This document shows, piece after piece, positions 3,601 to 32,754 of a DNA stretch of 36,781 bases. Every line of letters begins with the position of its first letter. Positions within the stretch are counted from its first letter, which is position 1. This stretch comes from Pelomyxa schiedti (lineage: Eukaryota; Protista; Evosea). The notes beneath the pieces are model-generated. The model was not told the DNA's origin and did no database searches. It worked only from the letters and a program-made list of their open reading frames with translations. The position numbers and the translations under genes were made by a program. Location of the stretch: assembly GCA_020536535.1 (NCBI GenBank), contig JAHLWZ010000418.1:1-36781 (forward strand). The letters are read 5' to 3'.

Positions 3601-4086
3601 AGCCAAATCTCAGAGTTTATGAGAATCCAGAGGGCGTCACTCTCTCCCCTCGACGTTGCCGGTTGGTTGATTTCCTTGCCCATAATCCCGCCGCACACTT
3701 AAAACACGCACAGAAGTGAACCGGCTATGCAGCGACCCTGAGGTCGGTGAAATGGCAATTGCAGAGTGCCTCGGCCGGCGCAATACAATCCTCGAGGCTC
3801 TGCGTTGTGAGCCAAAGTTCAACAACATCCCCCTGACTTGCGTACGAATTTTCGCACTCGTTATCGAGTCATGCCTCTCGATTCTAGGTTTTTTTTTGAT
3901 TCCCCCATTCCTCAATTCAACTTACCGCATGCACAACACTCACAAAAACCAAACTCAGAGAACAACCGGCCGCCGTTCTCGGCGATTGAAAAGCAGCTGA
4001 TGACGTGCGCGCAACTGGCATTTTGCCCCTCGGCTGACGACGATAACGTGGACGCGTGTGTCAAACGGTGCCTCGCTGATTTGTAG
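647..4086 (+). CDS. Multi-exon ankyrin-repeat / coiled-coil / ubiquitin-like / TKL-type protein kinase (gene 1)
   Basis: First exon 647-~1730 has many ACxGGHxDIVxxLL ankyrin repeats. Kinase motifs span short GT-AG introns: GTGSYGKV, VAVK, HPNIV, HRDLSSNN, DFG, GTPPYVAPQ, GDMWEF, RPPF. Stop at 4084-4086. Confidence 0.9.
2258..2281. repeat. (TA)n microsatellite in an intron
   Basis: Direct reading of the atatat run. Confidence 0.9.
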
Positions 4087-4216
4087 GCACTCGTTTTGGG
4101 TGACCTTTAGAACGAAGAAGCATTCCTTTTACAGTTTTATTTTTATTGCGTGATTCGTCTTTAGACGGGGGTTCTATTGATCATCAATATCGGGGCAGCA
4201 TCACTGGTGTCTGGGC

Positions 4217-7200
4217 ATGTTCACCACTACGTTGCACAACAACCAGTCACGAGTTGGGCCCCACGAGTGGTTCACCGCCGCGATTAGAGGAAACACTAAC
4301 TCACTGTGGGAGCTGCTGGCCGGCGACCCCCGCCTACTCAACTCTGTCAACGACCTACAACAACAAGTGGTGTGTAAACATTGTTTTTTTTTTTTTTTCC
4401 TTTTTTCTTTTTCTCACACCATCATCATTCAATACTACAATATACACAATAATTCAGACAGCGTTGCATGCAGCCACGTGGGGAGGGAGTCCAAAGTGCG
4501 TTGAGATCCTGCTGTCAATGAATATTAATGTCAGTTCCCAGGTTTGTTTGTGGATATGACCACTTATTTTGATACTCACAAACTTGTACCATCTCACTTC
4601 ACAGATTGTGTGTGACATACCTTTACATTCCCTTTTCTCTAAAATCACAAATTCTCCCCCCACCCTACACGGCCCTAGGGTGAGCCTGTATGTACCGCCT
4701 TATTCCCCAAACTCCTCTGACTTGCTCCAATTTCGCTCCTTGCCTCGTTTAGAATGTGTGCAAATGCCCCCACCAAACCTTTTGGTTTATCAATCACCAA
4801 TTATTATTATCATTCATCAATTTCTCTCACTTGCTTCAACTTTACTCCTTTCCTCACTCTGTGTTTAGGATGTGAGTAACTGCCACCCGTTTCATTGATT
4901 TCTCTGACTAACTTCCATTTCCTGCGTTGCTGCATGCTTAGTATGTGCGTAACCTGCCCCAACTCTTTTTTATTGCGTTATTAATCGATTTCTCTGTCTT
5001 GCTTCAATTTCCTGCCTTGCTTCACTATGTCCGTTTAGTATGTGTGTAACCCCTTGTTCATCATCTTTTCTGACTTGCTTTGATTCCAACTCCTTGCTTT
5101 GCTCTGTGATAAATTCAGGGAGTATGTAACAACTCCCCCAACCCTTTTGATAGAATTATACATCAATATCTCTGACTTGCTTCCATTTGCATGTTTAGTA
5201 TGTATGTGACCCCAACAACCCTTTTGTTGCATGACTCTTCGTTTCTTACTTGCCTCAATTTCACTCCTTGCCTGGCTCTGTGAAAAACTCAGGGAGTGTG
5301 TACCCTTTTTTATTATTCATCAATTTCTCTGACTTGCCTCGATTTCCTCCCTTGCTTCACTCTGCTACATGTAGTTTGTGTGTATCTGCCCCCCTCAACC
5401 CTTTTTTTTATTGCATTATTCATCAATTTCTCGGACTTGCTTCAATTTTCACTCTTGCTTTGCTCTTTGTGATAAATTCAGGGAGTGTGTTACCTTTTTT
5501 GTGTTATTCATCAATTTATCTGACTTCCTTCAATTTCACTCCTTGCTCTGTCTGGCGTGTTTAGATTGTGTGTAACTGCCCTCAACAACCCTTTTTTTTT
5601 CGCGTTATTTATCATCCGTTTCTCTGACTTTCTTCAATTTTCACCCCTTGCCTCACTGTGTAACATTTAGCAAGTGTGTAGCTTCTGCCCTCCTTTTTTT
5701 TATTGCATAATACATCAATTTGTTGCGTTGTTCATCAATTTATCTGACTTGCTTCACCATACTTTGCTCTGTCTGGTGTTTTAGCATGTGTGTATCCCTT
5801 ACCTCAGGTCTTTTATTAATATTATTCCCTAACTTCTCTGATTTGCTTCAATTTCACTCCTTGCCTCACTCTCTCTGTTCAGCGGGTGTGTAACTACCCC
5901 CACCCCACCCTGTTTTTCATGAATTATTCATCAACTTATCTGACTTGCATAAATTTCACTCCTTGCTTCACATCTGGCGTTTTTAGCTTGTGTGTAACTT
6001 TTTATTATTCATCAACTTCTCTGACTTGCTTCAACTTTCACTCCTTGCTTCACTCTGTCTGCGGCATGTGTTTAGTATGTGTGTAACTCATTCCACCCTT
6101 TTTTGTTGCATGATTCGTCTGTTTCTTACTTTCTTCAATTTCACTCCTTGCTTGGCTCATGAAAAACTCAGGGAGTGTGTACCTTTTTTGTTATTCAATT
6201 TCTCTGACTTGGTTTTTTCACATTTGTGGATTGTTGTATTGCCATCAGGGAGTAAGTAAACACTCCATTGCAGCTTTTCATTCTAACTTTCTGGATTTAT
6301 GGTATTTTGCACTGCAGATTGTACGAACTCACATCTTGATTCTATCTCCCTTGTGCTTACCTTATTATTTTTAAGGAAGTACGAGCTTTTTTCTTTTGTT
6401 CTTGTTGTCTTCCTTATATCTTTTCTTGGGGTCTCTCTCTTTCAACTGAAAGGGTGATGTAAGCCCCCCACCTCCAATGTGCTTTGTTTTCTTTCCCTTT
6501 TTTGTTGCTTATTTTATTTCCATCTTTCTCTCCCTCTTTAGACCGCACTTCACCTTGCCTGCAGATTTGGACATGTTCAAATTGTGAAACAACTTCTATC
6601 TTGTGTGGATATAGGTACTCACCTCAAGGTTGTTTTCCCCCTGTTTGATTGACATGTAATCTTTCTGTTGGCACAGAACAAGGATGGGAAAACAGCCCTC
6701 GAGTGCTCTAAAAATGATGAAGTGCGGCAACTGTTCCAAACTGTGTGTCCAACCACCACAACATTGCAAACAACAACACCAGAGGTCACCAATCCCAAAA
6801 CAGCCCAACAACAACCACATCCACAAGCCCCCTCTGCTCCGGACAATACATCATCATATGCATTCACATCAACAACGCAGGCAGCCACCACTCCTAAAAC
6901 AGCCCAACAACAACAACCACGGCTACCCTCTGCTCCAAACATGACTTCACTGCCACCATCCACCCCACCACAACCACAACCCAAACCAACAACTGTGGTG
7001 GCAACCACAACCACAACTGTGAGGACCAGCAAGGTGCTCCCGAAAGATCTCGAAGAACGTGGTGACATCATCATCAACGTCAGGAAACAAGAAAGAGACT
7101 CTTGGGAAATTGGGGCAAAGCAGCTGAATAGTTGAGTGAAACTCCCTCCTCCAATCAAATGCACAAACATTGGTGCCCATCATCTCACTCACTTTGTGTT

Positions 7201-10200
7201 CAAAAGACGAGATCACAGAACTGAAGGCACGAATCACACATTTGGAGTATAAAAACACCAAGTACCTGAACCTTCTCCATGAAGAAAGAAGATGCAGAGA
7301 GGCTGACCAACAACGAATCACACAATTGGAGGAAGAAAACGCAAAGAACCTGAATCTTCTCCATGAAGAAAGAAAACGCCATGAAACTGATCAACAAAGA
7401 ATTAAAGAAATGAAGCAACTCTATGAAAAGAGAGTAACTAACCAGCAAAGATTTCGTGAGCTGCAACAACAATGTTTGTGCTCCTCCCTCACCCTTTCCT
7501 TCCTTCTCCTCATTTCAGAGCTTCTTTTTTGTTTTTCTCATCTCATTTTCACATGAAGGGAAAAAGAATGCAGAAGTGTGTTTTGAACTTGTTTGCCTTG
7601 ATGATAATAAGTTTTCTTAACAACACACATCCACACAGATGGAGATCCAAAGGTTGCAAGAAAAAAGCACGTTGGATATGATGGCAAAGAACAAGGGTTT
7701 GAACACCTCCTCTTCCAGCAATTGAACTCATTAGCTCCCCTGCACTTTTTTTTTTTCCTTTTTCCAAACAGAGATTATGGAACTGGAGGCGCACATAACA
7801 ACACTGGAGGAAGAAGGTGCAAAGAACTTGAAGATGTTTTGTGACGAGAGAGCATCCTACCAACAAAGATTTCGTGATCTCCAACACTGTTTGTACTGTC
7901 CACCCAACACACTCCCTCACTTTTCTGACCACACACATGCAAAACCCAGTGCCCACTATTCTAACTGTAAATTCAGACACGAAACACGTGATGTCACATG
8001 TTGAACAAAGAGAAGGCACATGGTGCAACATTCTCCCTGAAAACAACAACAATGACTGCAAGCGATCACAAATCAGGATTACGTTTGAGGACCTTCCCTC
8101 TTTTGATGAAATTGTTTGTGCCTTCTGTCCCCTTCAAATGGTACCTCTCTTGAAACTCCCCCCTTTTCTTTTTTAAGCTTCCCTGCACTCCCTTTCTTGT
8201 GTTGTTGCTAACTGGTTGCTGTGTCAAAAAGATTGTGAAGCTTATCATTTCAAGGAAGTTTGGAGTTGAACCAACACAACAAGTAATTTTCACTGTTGGT
8301 TCAGAAAACAACTCTGAGGAGCTGTTGACCGATTCATCCAGAACCTTGGATGACATTCAACGACAACAAGAACAACAAGTCAGCCACAGCAGAAACGGAG
8401 CTGTTCAAATCAAGGTTCGAATCAAATCAACCATGTCAATACAAGAGAAAGACCTGAAAGTCATTTCAACACTTGGATCTGGATCGTACGGAACTGTTTT
8501 CAAGTGCACCTTCCTTCACAACACCACAACCACCCCTTCAGAAACAACAACAACGTTTGTGGCAGTGAAATCACTTCACGAAGCCATCAAGTCTGAGTTC
8601 AACATCACCAGGTTTCAGCAGGAAGCTCTGGTGCGTGAGACTTTGTCTCTGATATTGTGTTTGAAATTACTTCGTCAACTCACCATCATCACCACACACA
8701 GATTTCGTCAAGGTTGAGGCACCCAAACATTGTGAGATGCCTTGGAACGTGCATCACGAGCACAGGGTCACTCTGGATCGTGTCTGAGCTCATGGAATTG
8801 AGCCTCAGGCAGCTCCTTCATCATGTTTGTTTTGTTGCTCTCACCTCTTCTTTCTCCCACTTTACTTATTGGACTCACACAAATTGTAAATATGAAACTA
8901 CCAATCACAAAATTATTAGAAAGATTTGACATTCATGGAAGTTGTAGCAGTTTCCTCAGGAATTGCCAAAGGGATGACTGCACTTCACAGGTTTCATTCA
9001 ATTTAAGTTCTTCTTGCGCACTCTTTTAAAATAACCTTTATGTTGACCAGCTGCCATCTAATTCGCTTTCCCCAAAAAAAATCCAATTAAAAAAAACNNN
9101 NNNNNNNNNNNNNNNNNNNNNNNNNNNNNNNNNNNNNNNNNNNNNNNNNNNNNNNNNNNNNNNNNNNNNNNNNNNNNNNNNNNNNNNNNNNNNNNNNACA
9201 GGAGGAATATAATGCACCGGGACTTGAGCAGCAACAATGTTCTCCTTGATTCTTGTGGAACTCCAAAAATAACTGACTTTGGTACAATTGGCACACATAC
9301 ATACATCTCAACTCAATCCCAAAAACTGAAAAATGAAGGAGTGTCAAGAGCCCTCCAGCAGCACCAAACCAGCCGTGGTAGCAGATCAGCTCTGATTGGG
9401 AGTTTTACAAATGGAGCCGGAACACCGATTTACTTGCCACCACAGATGCACACTGGGCACTATGGGATTCAAGGTATGGATGGTGATAGTTCACACATAC
9501 ACACCAATATATTTCAAAAAGGAGACATGTGGGGGTTTGCAGTTTTGTTGAGTGAACTTCTTCAAGGCACCGTCCCGGAGGTCATACTCCCCAAGGCCAT
9601 TGCCAAAATCAGTGAGCTTATGAGGGTCCAGCGAGCATCACTCTCACCTCCAGAAATTGCCGGTTTGTTGTTGACAACAACACAAATTTTACTCGTCATC
9701 TGACTCACACACACACAGAAGTGGACCGGCTTTGCGACGACATTGGGGACATTCCCGTTGCGGAGTGCCTCGGCCGGAAGATTGCAATCATTTCCGCGTT
9801 GCGTTCCGCGCCCAAGATGAACGACGTGCACCGCGCGTGCGTTGGTCTGTTCTCTGTCCTTGTAGAGTCCTGCCTCTCGGTCCTCGNNNNNNNNNNNNNN
9901 NNNNNNNNNNNNNNNNNNNNNNNNNNNNNNNNNNNNNNNNNNNNNNNNNNNNNNNNNNNNNNNNNNNNNNNNNNNNNNNNNNNNNNCCCCCCCCCCCCCC
10001 CCCCCCCCAGTCTCTCCTGACTCCACAAAAACACGCAGAAACCGACCGGCCGTCGTTCCCGGTGATTGACAAAGTGTTGATGACGTGTGCCGAGATCGTG
10101 TTCACCAATAATTCCAGACCCAACCCGCCCACAAATACAAACAACACAGCCACAACGAGTGACAACCAGGACGTGGCGGGGCACATCACCAGGTGCCTCG

Positions 10201-22473: not shown

Positions 22474-25400
22474 TTACCAGCAGAGCCCCAACCGGAGAGC
22501 TTGCAGTTGGCCAATGGCACGAGCATCACCCAGGTCAGCTGCCCGATGCCACAATCCAATTGCCTTGTCAATGTCTTTGCCAATACCATCGGAGCCTTTG
22601 AAGTAACGCCATGCAATGCTGTTCATTGCTGCAGGATAGCCAGCATCAGCAGCCCTCTGAATCAGTGTAACTGCCTTGCTGATGTCCTTCTCAACACCCT
22701 TGCCTTTGAAATAACAGCAACCAAGGCCAGTCATTGCCCTGGCATTACCCACATCAGCAGCCCTCTGGTACAGTGTGACTGCCTTGTGAATGTCCTTCTC
22801 GACGCCATTGCCTTTGTAAAAACACACACCAAGGTTGCACATTGCGGTGGCATTACCAGCATCAGCAGCCCTCAGGGACAGCGTCACTGCCTTGTGAACG
22901 TCCTTCTCAACACCATTGCCTTTGTAAAAACACACAGCATGGTTGCACATTGCCCTGGCATCACCAGCATCAGCAGCCCTCTGGTACAGTGGCACTGCCT
23001 TGTGAATGTCCTTGTCAACACCTCCAACACCAAACTCATGGCAGAGGCCCAGAGATGTGACAGAGGAGGAACCCCAGTCAATTGGACCAACAGAACAAGT
23101 GATCGCAATGGGTTTTCCACTGGGAACACTGCATGGCGACGCTGCTGCTTGTGCCATGATTTCGGCTAAAAGGTGGCCTGCTGATGAACCTTCTTGGTGG
23201 TTGTCTGTGGATGAAGAGTAGCAGAACATACTCCACACGGCAAGAAAGTACATGCAAGACAACGACTGTTCTGCTGAAGATGTTGTGGATGATGACTGTT
23301 GATGATGAATGTTGAATCTCAGTGATGCTGTTGACACAAGGTCAGCCCATTCAGAAACAATGTACTCTTCTTTGTTGTTTGTTTCATTCAACACATGCAT
23401 GCAATGCATTCTCATTTCCTCTGGTGAGAAGGAGAGAGCACGAGAGAAAGCCAGCCACAGGCACGTGGGAATGTGCTGATGAAGTGACACGTGGTCATTG
23501 ATGACATAACGTACGCAAACAAGGAACAACAGACCAGGGAGGTAATAATAGTCATGATCTGTGGTGGTATTTTATTAACATTTGTGTTTTGTTGGACAAA
23601 AACAAAAATGTAGGTAGGAACACACCCGAGGTATTGATGATCATCTCAGATTCAAACAGGGAGAATGCGTTGGCAACAAGAGCAAGGGCAGAGTCAATGT
23701 TTCCCACTTGCAACTCCAAAAGTGCTTCCATCATCATCTCGTTTCGTGTGTAAATCACATTCCTCATAAAAATGGAGGCTGGTGTAACTGGTTCTTGTTG
23801 TATTGCTGCAATTGTCGTTGGGCTCTTTTTCAAAAGCAACAAGGCAGTGTTGTGGAAACTTTCAGTATCACCTGAAATGTGCCTTGTCCAGAGTGCCGTC
23901 AAAACCAATTCCGGGAGTGTGTTTCTATGTTTCTTGTTGATGATGGCTCTTGTAAATTCCACGTCTGTGGCTGTGAAGGATGCGGTCTTGCCTCTCAGTG
24001 ATGCAACTTCAACTGCTTGTTGATGACGACTGTCTGTTGTATGCTGGTTGCAAAAAGAGAGATAATGCAAAAGCAACAAAGCAGGTGAAAACACGGGGTC
24101 AACATCAAGTGCTTGGTGGAGGGTGTCAACACTGTCTTCCGTGGAGGAACCACAAAGAATCTGACATGTTGCCTTGCTTGTCAATGTAACTGAAATTGGA
24201 GTGTAAGTGAAAGATACTCCACCCTTATTCTTACAACCTGCATCGTTTGTCAGAGGAATAACACAAGAGTAAAAAGAGAGGAGTTCAGAAGGGCTTGGTG
24301 ACTCAATGTTCAACAGAACCTCAAATGCATCAAGTAAGGGCATTCTCTTATCAGGGTCACATTGCAACAATGAGCGAACGAGGTCACAGAACTCCTTTGG
24401 GAACTGTGGTGGCTTCATGGGGAAAAGCTCCTCACTCTCAAATAAGAATGTGACCTTTCTGCTTGGGCCATAATCATCAGGGTATCCTGGAAGTGGGTGC
24501 TTTCCGCACATGGCAAGCTCAAACAGGATGCACCCAAGTTCAAATGATGGTTGCTGTGTTTTTGTTGTTTGTGAGAGATGGACGAAGTTTCACATGATTA
24601 AATCCAAAATACCTTGTCACAACACAATGTTGAAGAGTGATCAGGGTTCTGCCTGTATCCTGCAATTCCATTGATGACCTCCGGTGCTCTGTGACTTGTA
24701 TTTCCTCTCACCGAAATGAGAGACCTTGTTTCCATCTCAAATGGTCTTCTTGTATTGCTGGTTCTGAGAAACTTTGTTGCACGACCAAGGCCAATCAAAA
24801 TCACTTGTTCTTTGTTCTGTTGATTAAATTGCATTTGGATGAGTATTTTGAGTGAACAAAAGAGAGGGCTGGGTGGGAACAGCACACACAGAAGAAACAA
24901 CGATGTTGTCCAGTTTGATGTCAAAGTGAATGGTTTGATTCACGAAAAGATGAACAAGAGCAGCACAGATATCCCTTGAATACTTGTGAACAATGGGCCA
25001 CGGTGTGGTCGTTGCACGGGGAGGAGCAATGTTTTTCATGTGCTTCAGGAAGTGTTCCAATGTCTCAGAGTGATGCTCGAACACAACCCACACACACACA
25101 CGCATCCTCTTCTGAACTGGGTCAAAGGCCATGCCCTTGGCCGCTGGTGGGAGGTAGTCATAAAACTCTTCTGGGATGCGGTCTCTGAAGTGACAGAAGT
25201 ACCGGTTTACATTTGGATGTGGTTCCAACGTGGAGGACACAACGTATTCATTCTGTTACAGGAGGAGAAGACAACAACAAAAAAGTAATGTCAATTGAGT
25301 TACGTCTCAGGCAGGAAGGATGTGCACGTTACCTCAAAGGCATTCTTCACACTTGCTGTAATACCATAATTCAAAATAGCCTTGAGGACATACGACTGGT

Positions 25401-31000: not shown

Positions 31001-32754
31001 ATTTGATGGGGAAGGGGTTTTTCACTGCACTCTTCAGCTGCTTTGCCTCGATTTCCCAGCAGTCTCTCTCTTGTTTCCTGATGTTGTTGCTGGTTCCCAT
31101 TGTTGTTGTCGTTGGTCTTGCTGTTGCCCCCACAGTTGCAGTCGGTTGTGGTTGTGGTTTTGGTGGGGCGGATGAAGATCGTGATGGCCTGTTTGGAGCA
31201 GAGGGTGGTATCGGATATGGCTGTTGTTGTGGGGCTGTTTTGAGAGTGGCAACTGCCTGTGTTGTTGCTGATGTTGTGGCTGGACACACGGCTTGGAACG
31301 CTTGATGCACTTGATCATTTTTCGAGCACTCAAGTGCTGTTTTTCCCTCCTTGTTCTGTTCCGATAGGAAAATTACAACATATCAATCAAACAAAAGGGG
31401 GGGGGGACCTTGATGTGAGTGCCAGTACCCACACAAGACAGAAGTTGCTTCACAATTGCAACGTTTCCTTTTCTGCAAGCAAGATGAAGCGCGGTCTGAG
31501 AGGGAGAGAGGGAGACGAAAATTAAGTTTTGTGTCAAGCATCAAATAAAGGAAAGAAAACAAAGGACATTGGGAGGGGTGGGCGTACATCACCCTTTCAA
31601 TTTGAAAGAGAGACCCCCAAAAGATATATGAGTAACACAACAAGAACAAGAAAAAAATGTTGTACTTCCTGAAAAATAAGAAGGTAAGCACAGGAAATAT
31701 TCAAGGAGTGGATTTCATACAATCTGCAGCAGTGCAAAATATCATAAAAATCGCGGAAAGTTAGAATAAAAAAAAAGCCAGGGAGTACTTACTCCCTAAG
31801 GATCCAATTGTCCAACAATAGGTAGAAAAATGAGAGAAAGTGTTTCAGAGAAATTGAAGCAAGTCAGAAACTGATGAATAAACACAATAAAAAAGGGATG
31901 GGAGCAGTTACGCACATACTAAATATGCCACAGAGAGTGAAGCAAAGAGAGATAAATTGAAGCAAGTCATAAATTGATGATTAAACGCAATAAAAAAGTG
32001 TTGGGAGCAGTTACACAATACTAAATATGCCACAGAGAGTGAAAGTGAAGCAAAGAGAGAAATTGAAGCAAGTCATAAATTGATGAATACAATAAAAAGG
32101 GATGAGAGCAGTTACACACAGGCTAAACATGCCACAGAGAGTGAAGCAAGGAGGGAGAAATTGAAGCAAGTCAGAAATTGATGAATAAGTGCAATAANNN
32201 NNNNNNNNNNNNNNNNNNNNNNNNNNNNNNNNNNNNNNNNNNNNNNNNNNNNNNNNNNNNNNNNNNNNNNNNNNNNNNNNNNNNNNNNNNNNNNNNNGCA
32301 ATAAAAAAGGATTGAGAGTGGCAGTACGTACAAGATCCCCCTGGATTTACGTTGTTAGAGGAAAGGGAATGAAAACATAATCAAGATAGGTATTACATAC
32401 AATCTGTGAAGTGAGAGATACAAATTTGTGAGTGCCTACAAAATAAGGACCCTCAAACCTGAGAATTCACATGGATATTCATTGACAGCAGGAACTCGAC
32501 GCACTGTGGGTTCCCTCCCCACGTGGCTGCATGCAACGCTGTCTGTGTGTGGCGGCGAAAACGAATTATTATCGTGTGGAGAAAAAAAAAAAAAGAATTA
32601 CGCGCATTGCACTCACCACTCGTTCCCGTTCGTCGTTGACAGAGTTTAGTATGTAGCGGTCGCCGGCCAGATGGCGCCGCAGTGCGTCGGTGTCGCCATT
32701 TTTCGCGGCACGGAACCACTCCTCCGGTCCCACGCCTGTCCATAGTTCTATCAT
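28021..32754 (-). CDS. Ankyrin (micro-exon loop) / coiled-coil / ubiquitin-like / kinase, copy C
   Basis: Start MIELWTGVGPEEWFRAAKNGD. Same exon chain and kinase motifs as copies A and B. Stop at 28021. Confidence 0.88.
31588..32403 (-). other. Micro-exon array in copy C (at least 8 intact, one defective, partly hidden by an N gap)
   Basis: ATT 32401-32403, GGGGATCTT 32332-32340, [gap 32198-32297], CCT 32120-32122, defective TAT(T) 32017-32020, TAT 31916-31918, GGA 31793-31795, ATT 31721-31723, GAA 31666-31668, GGTGAT 31588-31593. Repeat period about 102 bp at 31850-32195. Confidence 0.8.

Follow-up and report, generated by a model that had tools for sequence, protein, structure and literature searches.

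An ankyrin-kinase gene of the amoeba Pelomyxa schiedti carries, between two of its ankyrin-repeat exons, an array of 22 micro-exons, 20 of which consist of a single codon. This anatomy is unusual, and it is largely confirmed. Single-codon exons are spliced in the RNA of one paralogue, the codons of the variable units change rapidly in the amino acid that they encode, and the number of units is widely spread among paralogues. The explanation slightly favoured here is that all pieces are included in the mRNA and that the encoded loop diversifies in DNA, by gain, loss, and mutation of units under positive selection. Under full inclusion or skipping alike, the array would let a free-living protist vary one binding loop a single residue at a time, and twenty successive one-codon exons probe the limits of spliceosome geometry.

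Architecture of the gene and its micro-exon array

Pelomyxa schiedti is an anaerobic amoebozoan, free-living among bacteria and harboring endosymbionts. Its assembly comprises 52.4 Mb in 5337 contigs (PMC8887013). The genome was made from the amplified DNA of seven cells, and odd gene copies (those on contigs C1936 and C479, and one with a TGA unit) may therefore be chimeras or errors. The window, i.e., the whole stretch of 36,781 nucleotides that was analyzed, holds the gene on its forward strand (Table 1). The encoded protein consists, in order, of a capping repeat, an ankyrin repeat, the loop, a further ankyrin repeat, a cap, a Pro/Thr-rich linker, a coiled coil, a domain unmatched in Pfam, and a protein kinase. 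Three successive stretches match Pfam kinase profiles and follow the order of the profile (E 1e-4 to 6e-4), each singly below the cut-off. No Pfam match was found for the exons at 7977-8430, between the coiled coil and the kinase, and no NACHT domain was found in the exons scanned, ankyrin and kinase being the only domains matched. The N-terminus does not appear hydrophobic by eye.

The closest proteins are hypothetical proteins of P. schiedti, whose models miss the loop, since they start either shortly upstream of the post-loop exon or in unrelated sequence. Protein searches for loop-bearing relatives, limited by length and words, returned only three public P. schiedti gene models, all skipping the loop. 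One-codon exons are invisible to standard annotation, and public models lack both the loop and the N-terminus. A metagenome scan with the exon-2 pattern gave three identical matches in unrelated sequence, which were rejected as chance.

The array occupies positions 4542-6541 and consists of 22 phase-0 micro-exons, of which 20 are 3 nt long and the other two 9 and 6 nt; they leave 23 GT-AG introns of 55-113 nt. These counts and all coordinates had been given by a sequence-only reading of the window and proved exact on recount. Full inclusion adds 25 residues, in agreement with the peptide proposed in that reading (I-GEP-N-D-Y-Y-G-Y-G-F-G-I-Q-H-R-L-Y-G-G-I-E-GD). None of the micro-exons is or contains a stop codon, which is nearly automatic since T is the last base in 243 of the family's ~320 array codons. 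A stop-codon depletion test (1 seen vs. 12 expected from position frequencies) was set aside, as the third base is mostly T and the units are not independent of one another. The array introns were also said to be of normal size, and the ordinary introns of the gene are indeed similar, at 48-100 nt (88 and 48 nt from the sequence, 71-100 nt from RNA joints). A branch-like CTGAC, CTAAC, CTCAC, or CTTAC lies 10-70 nt upstream of AG in most array introns, and a pattern search found none in four of them.

The motif AG-NNN-GT has 27 matches in the 2 kb, compared with 2.3 on average and never more than 6 when the dinucleotides were shuffled 500 times, and AG/GT spacers of 0, 2, 4, 6, 8, or 10 nt occur 0-1 times each. 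The matches comprise the 20 exons of 3 nt, one site inside the 9-nt exon, and six echoes located 4 nt downstream of a real exon. The sequence-only reading had stressed the fixed 3-nt length and the AG/GT borders in otherwise indel-rich units. Both recur across the family: in ~210 units located from the donor side, with a filter that still favored acceptor-like context, AG lies exactly 3 nt upstream despite indel-rich introns. A decayed copy has lost this spacing.

Table 1. Features of the ankyrin-kinase gene, its micro-exon array, and the paralogous arrays in the window.
Feature	Position	Strand	Evidence or conservation
Coding exon 1: start codon and N-terminal capping ankyrin-like repeat, 51 aa	4217..4369	+	Paralogue RNA contig splices exon 1 to exon 2
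Exon 2: ankyrin repeat helices, phase-0 end	4458..4541	+	Pfam Ank 23.1 bits (cut-off 21.1)
Frame micro-exon 1 (Ile)	4605..4607	+	ATT in 15/21 paralogues
Frame micro-exon 2, 9 nt (G-x-P)	4679..4687	+	9 nt in every paralogue where parsed; Gly first in most
Variable array: 16 tandem units of intron plus one codon, ~70-115 bp	4688..6248	+	Units 60-83% alike within the gene
3-nt exons of the variable array, starts	4753, 4869, 4942, 5039, 5119, 5199, 5293, 5375	+	
3-nt exons of the variable array, remaining starts	5482, 5565, 5671, 5785, 5883, 5987, 6076, 6172	+	
Frame micro-exon Gly, canonical GTAAGT donor	6249..6251	+	GGA in 20/20 paralogues
Frame micro-exon Ile	6318..6320	+	ATT in 17/20, ACT in 3/20 paralogues
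Frame micro-exon Glu	6376..6378	+	GAA in most paralogues
Frame micro-exon, 6 nt (Gly-Asp), giving G-x ahead of T-x-L-H	6453..6458	+	G-D in 22/22 paralogues
Post-loop ankyrin repeat exon	6542..6628	+	Pfam Ank 31.2 bits; DARPin and ankyrin matches in PDB
C-capping repeat and Pro/Thr/Gln-rich linker	6677..7130	+	Own transcript, 0 differences, spliced 7130 to 7207
Coiled-coil exons, 84-bp repeats	7207..7888	+	Coiled coil from sequence pattern only
Domain without assignment, then protein kinase (tyrosine-kinase-like; GxGxxG, VAVK, HRDLSSNN)	7977..9700	+	Pfam PK_Tyr_Ser-Thr/Pkinase, exon by exon
Paralogous array, common frame, four cassette codons	14837..15744	-	Within the window
Second paralogous array, broken by assembly gap	31496..32458	-	Within the window

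The paralogue family and divergence of its cassette codons

Exon 2 occurs 28 times in the genome and the post-loop exon 26 times, and the family numbers about 30 genes, partial contigs counted. A genome search with the unit motif gave 120 matches, the first 100 of which all lie on contigs of this ankyrin-kinase family. Most paralogues have a common frame (I, G-x-P, cassette block, G, I, E, G-D), in which the cassette block varies from 2 to 24 one-codon units of ~100 bp each; loop length ranges from 5 to 33 residues. The frame exons are nearly invariant in 20-22 paralogues, and adjacent intron positions are mostly 25-75% identical.

The shortest members, C361 and C1160, have three one-codon exons and one 6-nt exon only, and these spell the canonical five-residue ankyrin hairpin D-x-x-G-x (D-H-F-G-D and D-A-D-G-E, respectively). 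A canonical hairpin in four pieces implies that all four must be included for a normal repeat. These short members suggest a possible history in which a hairpin already split into codons was later expanded via duplicated intron-plus-codon units. The differences between two near-identical arrays, on C706 and C2695, are codon changes; these arrays may be alleles or recent paralogues.

Several other loci were noted. The end of a short ankyrin-only member without kinase exons occupies positions 1-330 of the window (see also C1160, L096), and a different ankyrin-kinase gene, with related coiled-coil and kinase exons, lies just downstream of it at 647 to ~4090. At 32000-32030 (minus strand) the donor of one unit has lost its first G, and reading on to a donor 3 nt further along gives a possible in-frame exon of 6 nt (Tyr-Cys). 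A 108-bp tandem repeat of 3.5 copies at 22640-23022 resembles a Sel1-like coding repeat on the minus strand. Outside the window, a decayed member is found on C530 (~205500-207000; L067), which has lost part of exon 2 and in which some units lack AG or have a damaged donor. The copies on C1936 (L003) and C479 (L062) end suddenly, inside exon 2 or behind the 9-nt exon, and are fused to other sequence, either by deletion or as amplification chimeras. On C219 (L069, minus strand), an array unit with TGA has a perfect splice context; downstream exons look intact, and the 5' part falls in an assembly gap.

Between units within genes, codon positions 1-2 are 30-32% identical, compared with ~50-85% at most intron positions. 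Of 54 unit pairs whose flanks diverge by no more than 5%, 35 encode different amino acids and one is changed only silently. When pairs were picked on one flank and scored on the other, intron divergence was 8-9% and divergence at codon positions 1-2 was 48-54%. Cassette codons diverge about sixfold faster than the rest of the unit, almost only non-synonymously; the associated p-values are inflated, because units are related. These comparisons point to strong diversifying (positive) selection on the cassette codons. The encoded residues are ~15% Tyr, 12% Gly, 11% Leu, 10% Phe, 10% Ile, 9% Asp, and 7% His, in a parse that let in a few frame codons. This Tyr/Gly-rich composition is reminiscent of antibody binding loops. 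The codons GTT, GGT, AGT, and GTA, which would make competing splice sites, are absent from 320 units, and CGT and TGT occur eight times.

Splicing of the array and alternative explanations

The genome has 25 matches to U1 snRNA (loci L078-L095), 18 of them above the Rfam cut-off and many in head-to-head pairs, several of which combine one canonical and one variant copy. Of the U1 5' ends, 14 are variant and complementary to GTATGT, two are complementary to GTACGT, and nine are canonical or near-canonical. The array donor is GTGTGTA in 230 of 320 units, and forms a duplex with the main variant U1 from +1 to +7 that includes one G-U pair. Array donors have a mean duplex energy of -6.7 kcal/mol with the variant U1 vs. 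-3.2 with the canonical U1, the donor of the frame Gly exon favors canonical U1, and the ordinary first intron of the gene has the same donor as the array. Judging from this complementarity, the variant U1 may be expressed and used at array donors. Since its pairing is restricted to the intron side, the codon would be left free to vary and the removal of each intron would be favored.

RNA data were those of one single-cell run as Logan contigs, aligned to 4000-9000 at 80% likeness; such contigs lose rare variants, and minor splice forms are hidden. The gene is transcribed, as a contig with no differences crosses the 7130-7207 joint; none of the contigs of this run comes from this gene across its array. 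A paralogue contig (depth 16.4) aligns to exon 2, and its letters before exon 2 match exon 1 of C361. After exon 2 it continues with GAT, CAT, TTC, and five bases from the start of the 6-nt exon; this is their genomic order, and no piece is skipped. In the C361 genomic sequence these four AG-GT-bounded pieces lie apart within a stretch of 358 bp, and at least one belongs to a typical repeat unit. Single-codon exons are thus spliced in the ankyrin-kinase family, with full inclusion in this one contig of a four-exon array.

Other RNA contigs cross or enter the array region. The joint 4488-6542 starts inside exon 2, where GT follows 4488, and would be out of frame if direct; the intervening letters are unread. 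Joints 5565-6542 and 5586-6580 also cross the array, with unread inserts, and the gene origin of all three joints is ambiguous. Some contigs retain array introns of paralogues.

In the favored explanation the array encodes an extended loop, similar to an antibody CDR3, in the hairpin between two ankyrin repeats of the kinase protein. The ankyrin hairpin is the usual binding surface of such repeats. The short introns would be removed successively, each through its strong intron-side donor, to give a main mRNA with all 22 pieces, and the 25-residue loop would present a fixed stem and a 16-residue variable tip on the hairpin. Diversity would lie mainly between genes and alleles and arise in DNA. 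Because each codon sits in a ~100-bp repeat, unequal crossing-over or conversion could add, remove, or swap single residues in frame, and positive selection would then fix new codons. The family would represent fast-evolving intracellular ligand sensors coupled to a kinase, with a possible role in non-self recognition.

The sequence-only reading had proposed micro-exons that build the ankyrin hairpin and are skipped in up to 2^16 combinations. The first part is supported by C361 RNA, the conserved frame, and the diversifying codons; the second is a hypothesis, the sole readable transcript being all-inclusive. Combinatorial skipping, in which frame exons are kept and the 16 cassettes are often skipped to give many loop isoforms per gene atop DNA-level change, nevertheless has an appreciable, if less than even, chance of being correct. 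Every unit is in phase 0 with near-identical donors and acceptors, so that an upstream donor could join any later acceptor, and a 3-nt exon cannot hold both splice complexes simultaneously. Paralogues show that loops of 5 to 33 residues are tolerated. Frame symmetry, however, is equally required for gain and loss of units in DNA and does not discriminate between the two models. Against skipping, the only readable transcript, that of C361, has every micro-exon, array donors look strong given the variant U1, and genomes with short introns usually define introns and seldom skip exons. The favored full inclusion, for its part, has to face the fact that its all-inclusive transcript is one contig of a four-exon array. 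The TGA unit of C219 and the 4488-6542 joint with its unread insert count for skipping and against full inclusion, and retained array introns also count against the latter, as do truffle microexons, a precedent for skipping, which are described as comparable and alternatively spliced in the citing papers (PMC4986451, PMC10197012). Skipping and DNA-level diversification can coexist. In a bolder version, which is somewhat less likely again, the amoeba would have an antibody-like receptor repertoire with a resolution of one amino acid: skipping would produce hundreds to thousands of loop isoforms from each of some 30 ankyrin-kinase genes, the arrays would in addition change by recombination, and a variant U1 would make the codon sequence irrelevant for splicing. 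Such a system would be convergent with truffle NLRs.

The choice of one cassette codon per transcript, as in Dscam, would hold the loop at about ten residues; the cassette block is flanked by a fixed frame, and one variable position would suit a compact hairpin. This is very improbable, as adjacent repeat-type units are included together in C361 RNA, arrays reuse one codon (His nine times in C1936) with no gain under such a choice, and no recurring complementarity between a docking site and units was found, only scattered inverted matches of 10-25 nt. Hardly any credence is given to an intronic minisatellite that mimics splice sites, with the ankyrin exons joined directly or via the last exons only. 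In its favor, the central units are a tandem repeat, through which a single chance motif could have been multiplied, the micro-exons are absent from public gene models, and no RNA contig covers the array of this gene. On the other hand, the six non-repetitive frame micro-exons are conserved across paralogues, and the three central bases of the unit are the part that changes fast and almost only non-synonymously. The splicing of repeat-type units in the C361 transcript largely refutes this explanation.

Comparison with known systems

A literature search found no report of Pelomyxa microexons or single-codon exons. The sequence-only reading had likened the array to schistosome micro-exon genes (MEGs) and Dscam, but the likeness failed on coding share for MEGs and on single-cassette choice (in paralogue RNA) and docking for Dscam, and the closest precedent is the nank family of immune-like receptors in truffles. 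The primary description of the nank genes of Tuber melanosporum is reportedly that of Iotti et al. in 2012. According to papers citing it, nank (NACHT-ankyrin) is an expanded family in which tens of 3-bp microexons diversify the sensor domain (PMC4986451, PMC3689799, PMC10197012). As far as these descriptions go, the two systems share tens of consecutive codon-sized microexons (20 of 3 nt here), an ankyrin sensor, and an expanded paralogous family, a likeness drawn from the citing papers. They differ in that the Pelomyxa partner domain is a protein kinase and not a NACHT NTPase, so that the gene works like nank and is not a member. Alternative splicing is reported for Tuber in the same papers, whereas the Pelomyxa transcript is all-inclusive and the demonstrated variation is between genes. 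Given the kinase partner and the amoebozoan host, the origin is probably independent of that in truffles.

Schistosoma MEGs encode small secreted proteins; micro-exons account for as much as 75% of their coding sequence and were shown to be skipped (PMC4015677). Runs of symmetrical (3n) micro-exons are common to both, but those of Pelomyxa amount to 75 nt of an estimated 2.7 kb of coding sequence (~3%) in a long multidomain kinase gene, are confined to a single loop, and with two exceptions have a length of exactly one codon. Brown-algal ROCO and NB-ARC-TPR genes are described as candidate receptors with DNA-level shuffling of exons as in-frame units (Zambounis 2012, via PMC10197012); going by that description, the Pelomyxa unit differs in being one codon plus an intron, and not a whole repeat.

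Tandem duplicated cassettes in a recognition domain are found both here and in arthropod Dscam1. In Dscam1 the cassettes are ~100-300 nt, mutually exclusive, and chosen by docking/selector pairing. The Pelomyxa units are far smaller, with no mutual exclusion in paralogue RNA and no recurring docking complementarity. Antibody CDR-H3 and LoopDARPins carry a long aromatic/Gly-rich loop on a stable scaffold; the loop of LoopDARPins is placed at the ankyrin hairpin. The variation demonstrated in Pelomyxa lies between genes, and none of it is shown to be somatic. The loop-on-ankyrin layout is a natural counterpart of the engineered loop DARPins.
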